Part shown: one piece after another, positions 25,937 to 28,900 of the stretch
How positions within the stretch are numbered: position 1 is the stretch's first letter
Layout of the letters: every line of letters begins with the position of its first letter
Source: Macrostomum lignano
Taxonomy: Eukaryota
Direction: 5' to 3'
Length of the DNA stretch: 64,000 nt
Assembly (NCBI GenBank): GCA_002269645.1
Contig: NIVC01000642.1
Coordinates: 1 to 64,000 of the forward strand
The notes under the pieces: model-generated
Databases searched by the model: none
What the model saw: only the letters and a program-made list of their open reading frames with translations
Told to the model about the DNA's origin: nothing
Made by a program: the position numbers and the translations under genes

Positions 25937-28900
25937 ATGAGCTGCTCCCAGATGGCGCCAAAAACTCCCAGGACGCCGAGGATGGCGACCCCGCTGACAC
26001 CGAGTCTGTCGAGAGCGCTGCCGCCCATCGCACAGGAGACGGTGGGCAACCGGCTGTCGCGGTCCTACACCCTGCCGCCTGGGGTGTCGCACGCCCAGAA
26101 CTTCTACAACCCAGCCAGGTGGGATAAAAACTGAAAGTTAGATGCCCCGGTGGGATGAGACACAGAAGTAGGTAGAGAAGGAGGGATGAGATAGATAAGG
26201 GCTGTCCAAGAGAGAGGGCACCTGAGGCAGTGCAAACTTCTTCTCCACCCGCGCGCACTGCAGGAACGCCGTGTACGCGAGATTCAGCACGGATGACTGG
26301 AAGAAGAGCAACACGGCCAACTTCGGCGTGTCCGAGAAGGAGCGGGCGGAGGCCGAGCGACTGCGTGCTGAGGCCTGGCGCACCGTGCGGGCCACCGACC
26401 AGCGAACCAAGGCGAGGCAGAGCGACGCGTCGAAACGGCTGAGTGAGTGACTTGGACAGTGAATGAGTGACTTTAGCGTGAATGAGTGACTTTAGCGTCA
26501 AAAAGTGACTTTAGCGTGAATGAGTGACTGGGGGTGTGAATGAGTGACTGCATGGGGGCGTGAATGAGTGACTTGGAGAGTGAATGAGTGACTGGGGTCA
26601 TGAATGAGTGACTTGGAGCGTGAATGACTGACTTTAGGGTGAATGAGTGACTGGTAGAGTGAATGGGTGACTTGGATCGTAAATGAGTAACTTGGAGCGT
26701 GAATGATTGACTGAGGGCGTGAATGAGTGACTGACTGGGGCGTGAATGAGTGACTGACTGGGGCGTGAATGAGTGACTGGGCTTGAATGAGTCACTGGTA
26801 GAGTGAATGAGTGACTTGAAGCGTAAATGGGAACTGAGGGCTGAGAGTGCTGACTACTGGAAGAGTGAGTGAGTAGGTATTACCCACTCCTTTCGTAGGT
26901 GCTCCACATTCACCCGATGAGTTTTCAGCTGACAGTACTTTAAGTAGTATCAGTCGCGTCAGCAAATTAGACATCAAGTAGAACCAGAGCATTTTCCAAT
27001 AGCGTACTTGAGTCCCAAGTCTGAGCTGTTTAATCGGTTCCTCATCCGTCCGCGCCAGACGAGCGCCTCGAGGACATTCAGTTCTGGCGCCGCGAGCTGC
27101 AGAAGGAGTCGCAGCTGAATCACGATGAAAGCGAGAATCTGTCGGTAATGATCTGAAAAATAAATCCTGACAAAATTTGCTGACTGAGCTACTGAGAGTA
27201 GTCAAGCTAGAATGCCTCTAGTTGCTTTCTCTTAAACTAGATTCTTAAGTTTGATAATAACTCGAGTGATTTAACCTGCTAACCGTCTTGTTTTTTTCAT
27301 CCGCATGGGCCTTTGCTTACCTTTACTTCTAATATATTTACCTTAGAGGAGAGATTCTCCGACATTGAGCTGTGGACTGACTGCCTGACCGATGAAGGCA
27401 GAAGGCAGCTGGACTCAATGAACTCGCTGGAGGTAAAACTTTAATCTGACTTGGAAAACCCAGGAAACCTGTCACCTGAGTCTGAGTATGTTAAAGTCAT
27501 TTTGATCTGCTTTTTCACTTTTTATAACTTGCACATTAATACTTATTTAGTATGTAAATTCATTCTGCTTGAGCACCGATTTTAGTGACTGCAAATTCAA
27601 ATTTAACCCCCTAAATTTTAAATGTGTTATCAATGATGCACGTTGGGTGACCACTTCTTGTGAAACAGAAGCTCCCGGGATTCCCCTACTGGAGCAGAAG
27701 CTCCCGGGATTCCCCTACTGGAGCAGAAGCTCCCGGGATTCCCCTACTGGAGCAGAAGCTCCCGGGATTCCCCTACTGGAGCAGAAGCTCCCGGGAGTCC
27801 CCTACTGGAGCAGAAGCTCCCGGGATTCCCCTACTGGAGCAGAAACTCACTGGATTTCCCTACTGGAGCAGAAACTCACTGGATTTCCCTACTGGAGCAG
27901 AAACTCACTGGATTCCCCTACTGGAACAGAAACTCTCGGGGTTCCCCTACTGGAAGAGAAAATCACGGGATTCCCCTACTGGAACAGAAACTCTCGGGGT
28001 TCCCCTACTGGAAGAGAAAATCACGGGATTCCCCTACTGGAGCAGAAACTACCGGGATTCCCCTAATGAATCTAAACTTCACGGGATTCCCTGCTAGAAC
28101 AGAGACTCGGAAATCCCGCATCAGTTGCCATCGCTGCCTCCTTCTTGCAGGAGCACCTCCGGGTGCTGGAGAACGCGTTGCAGCACACGGCCAAGCCGCT
28201 GAAGATCTCGGAGGAGTGCCTGATGAATCGCGAGAAGAGGATCGGCATCGATCAGGTGCACGATAATGTGGAGCGCCAACTAATCAAGGTGAGTTTAATT
28301 TCCACAGCTAATTAGCCTGCATGATTCTGTACACGTGTTTATTGACCCAGTTTCAATGCTCACTTTCAGGAAGTTGAAGTTATCAAGCGTTGTCAAGGTG
28401 ACATGCAGAAACTGATCGATAAAGCGAAAGTGCAGCTTAAGTGAGTCGAAAAACTATAGTTAATTATAAATAATATTTCGTGCATGGATCATACCTAACC
28501 AAACCTATTCAGACCTAACTTTAACCCCAACCCTAACCCTAACGCCGTTGCTAAAGTGGTCTGGTGCGGCGCTCTGATGCGCTCTGATGGCCCAGGCTCG
28601 ATTCCAAGTGCAGTCACATTAATTTGGGGCTGAATTGGAATCTCGGCTTGGCTCTGCTCGTGCAATTAACGGCCTTGAGAGCCAACCCCCAAGGCACAGT
28701 GAAGTGTACATGCTTAACAATAAATAAAGTTAGGGCCGCTGTACACTCCTGTGTGAGTGTGTGTCTGTGCGTATGACTGCGTACGTATCCGCGCGCTTGT
28801 GTGCCTGCTCAGGGGAGTCGGGCAGCAATGCGTCTCGCCGGTTGTGCGACAATGTCGCTTAAAGTGCGCCAGGGTGCACACAGCCCCTGTCTTTACTAAA

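Follow-up and report, generated by a model that had tools for sequence, protein, structure and literature searches.

A diverged second copy of an exon in a tektin-3/5 gene of Macrostomum lignano is predicted to be a mutually exclusive coding alternative

Tektins form hyperstable filaments inside ciliary doublet microtubules, and inner scaffolds specific to one type of cilium are usually explained by gene paralogs, e.g. TEKT3 and TEKT5. A 64-kilobase (kb) stretch of genomic DNA from the free-living flatworm Macrostomum lignano (hereafter the window) contains a tektin gene, BOX15_Mlig004034g1, in which an annotated exon of 86 nucleotides (nt), here called 3a, is followed in the next intron by a second, unannotated segment of the same length, here called 3b. 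The locus raises the question whether 3b is a maintained coding exon that is used in place of 3a, a relic of such an exon, a regulatory exon, or an intron sequence that resembles a tektin exon by accident. A manual splice model of the gene, with 10 exons and with all introns of the GT..AG type, has the following parts (window coordinates).

25937-31374, + strand: putative tektin-3/5B gene BOX15_Mlig004034g1, from start to stop codon
25937-26118, + strand: exon 1
26264-26442, + strand: exon 2, the last base of which is the first base of the junction codon
27059-27144, + strand: exon 3a, 86 nt, the conventional version, used in the annotated protein
27347-27432, + strand: exon 3b, 86 nt, the diverged alternative, absent from all annotation
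28151-28288, + strand: exon 4, the common acceptor for 3a and 3b
28370-28440, 29485-29628, 29957-30179, 30280-30434 and 31143-31374, + strand: the exons after exon 4

Exons 3a and 3b are each preceded by AG and followed by GT, and an intron of 202 nt lies between them. The first two bases of each complete the codon split at the end of exon 2, which becomes AAC (Asn) with 3a and AAG (Lys) with 3b, and each closes with a complete codon before exon 4. Either exon alone gives an open reading frame of 1410 nt encoding 469 amino acids (aa). When both are included, the spliced sequence has 1496 nt, the frame shifts and a stop codon follows 13 codons into 3b; when both are skipped, the sequence has 1324 nt, the frame likewise shifts and a stop codon lies within exon 4. 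Thus, because 86 is not a multiple of three, only mRNAs containing exactly one of the two copies stay in frame. An earlier model-made note on this DNA (the sequence-only reading) had described two GT-AG exons of this length, spacing and equal phase, and had stated that inclusion of both or of neither breaks the frame; all of its coordinates proved correct, and the early stops are found in both splice models.

The protein with 3a is identical to GenBank PAA79284.1 and carries the tektin domain Pfam PF03148, as precomputed for the identical protein cluster. Its top-ranking matches are tektin-3-like proteins of nemerteans, molluscs, annelids and brachiopods (54-64% identity), with a Platynereis protein named tektin 3/5B among the matches at 58% identity, and a second group of matches at 44-51% identity apparently represents the other paralog. 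Among solved structures, the best match in phmmer is bovine Tektin-3 (7rro_C0, E = 6e-111, residues 60-457); the top matches are Tektin-3 of bovine, human and mouse doublet microtubules, then Tektin-5, and the PDB bit scores fall from TEKT3 (375) through TEKT5 (324), TEKT1 (258) and TEKT4 (241) to TEKT2 (124). Judged by these matches, the gene is a tektin of the 3/5 group, and the identification given in the sequence-only reading is borne out by PF03148 and by Tektin-3 as best structural match. Placement in the 3/5B subclade comes from match ranking and names and is provisional.

The relationship between 3a and 3b was analysed with an exon profile, built from 96 distinct non-Macrostomum versions of the exon and scanned on 1870 six-frame segments of the window. 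Exon 3a scored 39 bits (E = 5e-11) and 3b scored 8 bits (E = 0.3), which still made 3b the second-best match in the 64 kb. Between the two peptides, 9 of 28 residues are identical (BLOSUM62 score 39). The two DNA sequences can be aligned without a gap at 38 identical positions out of 86 (56% different), BLASTN of 3a against 3b returned no alignment, and 3b has no second occurrence within the window. With likeness at the DNA level gone, the duplication must be old. Family constraint was taken from an alignment of 31 tektin-3/5 proteins, in which the invariant columns of this segment are R123, I127 and E137 and the nearly invariant ones are D126, W130, E133, E144 and L148. Exon 3b retains each of the three invariant residues as well as D126, W130 and L148 from the nearly invariant five and, as judged by eye, is hydrophobic at most positions that are hydrophobic in the family.

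Could an ordinary open stretch of intron between an AG and a GT resemble a tektin exon by coincidence? The E-value of just 0.3 over the window and the lack of DNA-level similarity to 3a would fit such an explanation. Against it, 3b is the best match in 64 kb other than 3a itself; its place is the next intron on the strand of the gene, and it matches 3a exactly in length and phase, with both borders in register; it has a coding-like composition; it is conserved in a paralog; and it stands at an exon that is duplicated in five other lineages, as detailed below. We consider a coincidence very improbable and a true duplicated exon pair highly probable. The homology case is carried by position, length and phase, the sequence evidence alone being weak. 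The sequence-only reading had called 3a and 3b homologous duplicates, with 3a conventional and 3b strongly diverged yet open, and both descriptions hold in view of the shared family residues, the register, the equal length and phase and the difference between 39 and 8 bits.

In 3b, the predicted frame is the only open one, and the other two frames hold two to three stop codons each. Its G+C content (GC) is 0.547, with 0.75 at third codon positions (GC3) and 0.39 at second positions (GC2), the same codon-position pattern as in the rest of the gene's coding sequence (GC3 0.815, GC2 0.413); the unique intron sequence on its two sides has a GC of 0.35 and 0.34. At intron composition, the chance of a GC3 of at least 21/28 is 2e-5. 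These values bear on the possibility that 3b is a dead relic of an alternative exon once in use, which is intact because too little time has passed. A frame of 28 codons would be open by chance about 26% of the time, as a relic allows, whereas neutral drift should carry the sequence to the intron GC of 0.35, and 3b has kept the GC3 and the codon periodicity of the gene.

Comparison with other copies of the locus gives a second view of constraint. M. lignano has at least three copies of this tektin locus, i.e. the window and two further loci, L001 and L003, and all three contain both exons with intact splice sites and an identical 3b peptide. L003 is a near-identical allele of the window sequence and adds no independent information. 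Between L001 and the window, the introns differ by 35 substitutions in 563 aligned positions (6.2%) and by 6 indels, corresponding to 0.17 gap openings per substitution, and the coding sequences differ by 15 synonymous and 6 nonsynonymous changes in 1410 nt. Exon 3b has a single change in its 86 nt, a synonymous CTG to CTA, where the intron rate predicts about 5; 3a also has a single change, which is nonsynonymous (Asp to Asn). At the intron rate, at most one change in 86 nt has a probability of P = 0.027, for a test that is a single 86-nt sample and is weaker at the synonymous rate of about 4%. The comparison is therefore suggestive rather than conclusive of constraint on 3b. The divergence of L001 is also uneven: it reaches about 8-10% over the gene's 5' half, introns included, and is only 1-2%, introns included, between window positions 29405-30466 and L001 positions 13231-14484, and this pattern suggests that gene conversion took place or that the copies have a mosaic history.

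The splice acceptor of 3b has a distinctive upstream region.

27265-27346, + strand: 3b acceptor region, with a 78-nt AG-free stretch, CTAAC and a pyrimidine-rich tract

The AG-free zone before the 3b acceptor is 78 nt long in the window and 85 nt in L001, as compared with 17-32 nt at the gene's other acceptors; the region also includes the branch-point consensus CTAAC at 27279-27283, which is kept in L001. Regulated alternative exons are known for long AG-exclusion zones and distant branch points.

For a relic, the paralog test is weak evidence to overcome (P = 0.027), and two further facts would suit it: 3b is extremely diverged from all other versions of the exon (7-8 versus 45-68 bits) and occurs in no annotation nor among catalogued proteins. 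A relic should, however, also have gathered indels, and 3b has none while the neighbouring intron does; moreover, diverged paralogs preserve its length, its two splice sites, the unusually long zone without AG before the acceptor, and the invariant residues. On this evidence we regard a relic as unlikely, and as the most serious of the rival explanations. The same splice signals would serve a 'poison' exon, which would be joined with 3a to cause a frameshift and nonsense-mediated decay and so tune tektin levels without providing an alternative protein segment. The stop codon 13 codons into 3b upon joint inclusion is well upstream of the last exon junction, and the splice signals of 3b are conserved, both in keeping with that role. 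A poison exon, however, needs neither an open frame nor tektin residues (ER..DI..W...L..E...........L) nor a high GC3 in the tektin frame, and the equivalent copies in other phyla are modelled as protein-coding alternatives. We give this role little chance.

Several observations weigh against the use of 3b as a coding alternative to 3a. All three GenBank models of M. lignano use 3a, and the exon in two contigs from RNA-sequencing assemblies of the nearest relative found, which is 86% identical, is of the 3a type. About 15 billion catalogued proteins do not include the full-length 3b isoform, a catalogue without assembled M. lignano transcripts of this gene. On the family profile, 3b reaches 7-8 bits, whereas 45-68 bits are reached by both copies of other phyla; E133 and E144, both nearly invariant, are replaced in 3b, and a glycine lies in mid-helix. 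In addition to the limits of L003 and of the paralog test given above, an inverted-repeat search found no convincing competing RNA pairing or structural exclusivity mechanism at the locus. Searches with shorter queries do not bear on the matter: a 55-aa query centred on 3b yielded no candidate, missing even the known M. lignano protein with the same flanks, and is not informative on 3b; a 158-aa query returned one unrelated fragment, the word index being too sparse for short queries; and a 32-aa query with 3b, run against 1.84 billion cluster representatives, had 0 matches, which tells nothing about 3b, since the query is short and any 3b isoform would be grouped with the 3a form. Altogether, we predict, with a probability of roughly 0.65, that 3b works as a coding exon and is used as the alternative to 3a.

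The same exon was then located in tektin-3-like genes of other spiralians. In the following list, copy positions are given in locus coordinates and refer to the 84 nt that encode the peptide.

Haliotis asinina (Mollusca), L004: 2 copies (5537, 6044)
Crassostrea angulata (Mollusca), L006: 2 copies (2709, 3185)
Lingula anatina (Brachiopoda), L005: 2 copies (2156, 2685)
Ridgeia piscesae (Annelida), L007: 2 copies (4325, 4819)
Lineus longissimus (Nemertea), L002: 4 copies (7060, 7785, 8168, 8830)
Bugula neritina (Bryozoa), L008: 1 copy

The tandem copies in Lineus, Haliotis, Crassostrea, Lingula and Ridgeia are 86-nt exons with AG..GT borders in genomic DNA, and the duplicate site in M. lignano has the same flanking residues and exon size as in those five genera. 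In the spiralian tektin-3-like genes with modelled isoforms, the exon lies between ...K(R/K)L(G/N/K) and E(H/Y).R.LE and consists of 2 + 84 = 86 nt in the same phase. Its copies stand in tandem, each with AG/GT borders, and the isoforms have no differences outside the 28 residues. In Lineus longissimus (OU342999.1, L002 7060-8913), four tandem versions are present, all of them open and bordered by AG..GT, and RefSeq lists four isoforms, X1-X4 (XP_064634138.1, XP_064634139.1, XP_064634140.1 and XP_064634141.1). When copies 2, 3 and 4 were swapped into X1 in silico, the products were exactly RefSeq X4, X2 and X3, respectively. Thus, a four-way alternative at this exon has already been modelled. 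Among oysters, abalone and mussel, NCBI isoform pairs are, except in Potamilus, of equal length and differ only in the homologous 28 residues.

Crassostrea angulata X1/X2: isoform pair P0010/P0012
Ostrea edulis X1/X2: isoform pair P0015/P0011
Saccostrea cucullata X1/X2: isoform pair P0018/P0017
Haliotis asinina X1/X2: isoform pair P0043/P0057
Mytilus: isoform pair P0029/P0046
Potamilus: P0022/P0054, 474 versus 445 aa, identical outside the segment wherever aligned

In the molluscs, the copy ERVYDI.FWKSELNNE.NAMATE.EN.K is nearly frozen across bivalves and gastropods, and the other copy evolves faster. M. lignano displays the same asymmetry in an extreme form. All copies of the other spiralians score 45-68 bits and are included in gene models of oysters, abalone, mussel and Lineus, whereas the second copy of M. 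lignano is the low-scoring 3b and is unannotated. The order also differs, the conserved 'NNEINAMATE' copy being the downstream one in Haliotis and Crassostrea and the conventional copy the upstream one in M. lignano. Exon 3a is closest to Lineus copy 1 (16 of 28 residues) and Lingula copy 1 (14 of 28), with which it shares ER(V/L)EDI.FW(K/R)(K/R)EL, and this likeness would suit an old cluster. However, the copies of Lingula are most similar among themselves, as are those of Lineus, and 28 residues are too few to decide how the copies arose; one ancient duplication, repeated duplications and gene conversion would all be compatible with this comparison. In total, the shared position and exon anatomy suggest that the M. 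lignano pair is part of an exon cluster at one position in at least five spiralian phyla. A broader scenario, that an ancient mutually exclusive cluster in helix 1A predates the split of flatworms, nemerteans, molluscs, brachiopods and annelids, that one to four copies were kept for more than half a billion years for different cilia and that in Macrostomum, with the sperm flagellum lost, the second copy was remodelled until barely recognisable for a lineage-specific cilium type, is put forward tentatively and is, on balance, doubtful.

Other records touch on the same exon. The second copies in Lingula anatina (L005 2685-2768) and Ridgeia piscesae (L007 4325-4408) are intact and unannotated, and are probably missed alternative exons. 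For the oyster isoform with the conserved copy, P0010, there are 582 contig-index blocks, all but one of them with only contigs shorter than 5 kb, and for the isoforms with the alternative copy, P0012/P0014, the reference genome is the sole record; the alternative exon thus seems to be a minor form in bulk assemblies. Two Nucella lapillus models, P0032 and P0052, contain two versions of the segment in series (e.g. ERVHDIAFWKSELNVEIGHMENELNDLK...ERVYDISFWKTELNGEVNSMATEIENLK), apparently because gene prediction wrongly joined the two alternative exons.

In the AlphaFold model of the 3a isoform (mean predicted local distance difference test score, pLDDT, 79.7), helix 1A spans residues 70-176 (107 residues, with a one-residue break at 162), 1B residues 188-246, 2A residues 272-378 (107 residues) and 2B residues 389-451. 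The swapped segment, residues 122-149, occupies the central part of helix 1A, corresponds in the alignment to residues 147-174 of bovine TEKT3 and has block-mean pLDDT values of 90-97 over most of its length. In bovine tektin, 1A and 2A have about 108 residues, twice as many as 1B and 2B; half of each long helix is part of a three-helix bundle and the other half forms an overhang that pairs with the next monomer, and the linkers stabilise the head-to-tail contact of the monomers (PMC8595878). As modelled, the M. lignano protein is a four-helix rod, 1A/1B/2A/2B, that fits this description. Segment 122-149 would lie at the transition from overhang to bundle, near the junction between monomers.

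The exclusive use of 3a and 3b would be most simply explained by reading frame and nonsense-mediated decay, with mRNAs that include or skip both exons being removed by that decay. Isoforms with 3a would provide the standard filament subunit. Those with 3b would provide a minor variant of unchanged rod length that keeps most core and hydrophobic positions and has its exposed residues replaced, and the swap may alter lateral or longitudinal filament contacts inside ciliary doublet microtubules. Two other mechanisms of exclusion were considered and set aside. Steric exclusion was rejected for the reason that the 202-nt intron is too long, with 134 nt from the 3a donor to the CTAAC at 27279-27283, the more distant of two branch-point candidates. 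A perfect 11-nt inverted-repeat pair that brackets 3a (26958-26968/27174-27184) was rejected as a loop-out element; chance alone predicts about 0.3 pairs of this kind, and L001 differs from the window at three positions of one arm. As to the cells that would use 3b, the sequence-only reading had suggested, as an example, one isoform for epidermal cilia and another for sperm or testis. Sperm of Macrostomum have no flagellum according to a published description (bioRxiv 10.1101/2021.03.28.437366), and so a sperm-axoneme isoform is unlikely. Some ciliated subset, e.g. protonephridial, sensory or gut cells, might be the users of 3b instead, which is speculation.

Mutually exclusive exon clusters that arose by tandem exon duplication are well known from tropomyosin, Drosophila Mhc and Dscam1, and FGFR2 IIIb/IIIc. 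In the M. lignano pair, as in these clusters, homologous exons with the same length and phase lie side by side, a protein module can be swapped at constant length and the frame needs exactly one copy; as in tropomyosin and myosin, the module belongs to a coiled-coil filament protein, and in M. lignano it is a helix segment. In contrast to the classical clusters, neither a steric constraint nor docking/selector RNA pairing was found for the pair, and its exclusivity would come from frame and nonsense-mediated decay alone. Within the tektins, the 3/5 lineage is the one most often duplicated (PMC6357514), and the pair resembles TEKT3/TEKT5 and the spiralian 3/5A and 3/5B (PMC6357514) as a diversification inside this lineage; those, however, are whole-gene duplications, whereas M. 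lignano duplicates 28 residues of helix 1A inside one gene. The main study of tektin evolution makes no mention of splicing, isoforms or exons (PMC6357514).

A literature search found no paper that describes mutually exclusive exons in tektins, the co-mentions examined lying in unrelated passages or in papers with titles on unrelated topics, and no paper that pairs tektin with tandem exon duplication. The earlier statement that no exclusive pair has been described in tektins therefore stands as far as papers are concerned and needs a qualification for databases, in which RefSeq models of oysters, abalone, mussels and a nemertean already encode an alternative at the same exon. What is new is the M. 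lignano pair, which is unannotated and unusually diverged, mutually exclusive exons themselves being well known; the phylum-spanning distribution of the tektin exon cluster seems to be unreported. If the prediction for 3b is correct, an exon-level switch at the centre of helix 1A, common to several spiralian phyla, would represent a second and more compact route to cilium-type-specific filaments, and the 28 residues would offer a handle for probing which contacts of the tektin rod matter. For annotation, a missed alternative exon is flagged in M. lignano, Lingula and Ridgeia, and the exon cluster explains some faulty gene models that string both copies together.

Finally, tandem arrays flank the exon pair in both neighbouring introns.

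26440-26829, + strand: tandem array of a 20-nt unit, about 19 copies (TGAATGAGTGACTTGGAGCG), which opens intron 2
27666-28091, + strand: tandem array of a 29-nt unit, 14.7 copies (CAGAAACTCCCGGGATTCCCCTACTGGAG, 90% matches), in the intron downstream of 3b

The 20-nt array begins exactly at the exon-2 donor (CTGA/GTGAGTGACTT, the slash marking the splice point), and thus each unit repeats a donor-like TGA/GTGACT; the array is also present in L001 with a different copy number. The units could serve as serial decoy donors immediately ahead of the alternative exons. The 29-nt unit contains a pyrimidine run followed by CAG, and this array is likewise present in L001. Further downstream, a perfect (AGT)96 microsatellite (29636-29923, 100% matches) fills most of tektin intron 6, and just past the tektin stop codon, at 31573-32999, a 61-nt array (20.5 copies, 95% matches) is followed by (TC)75.

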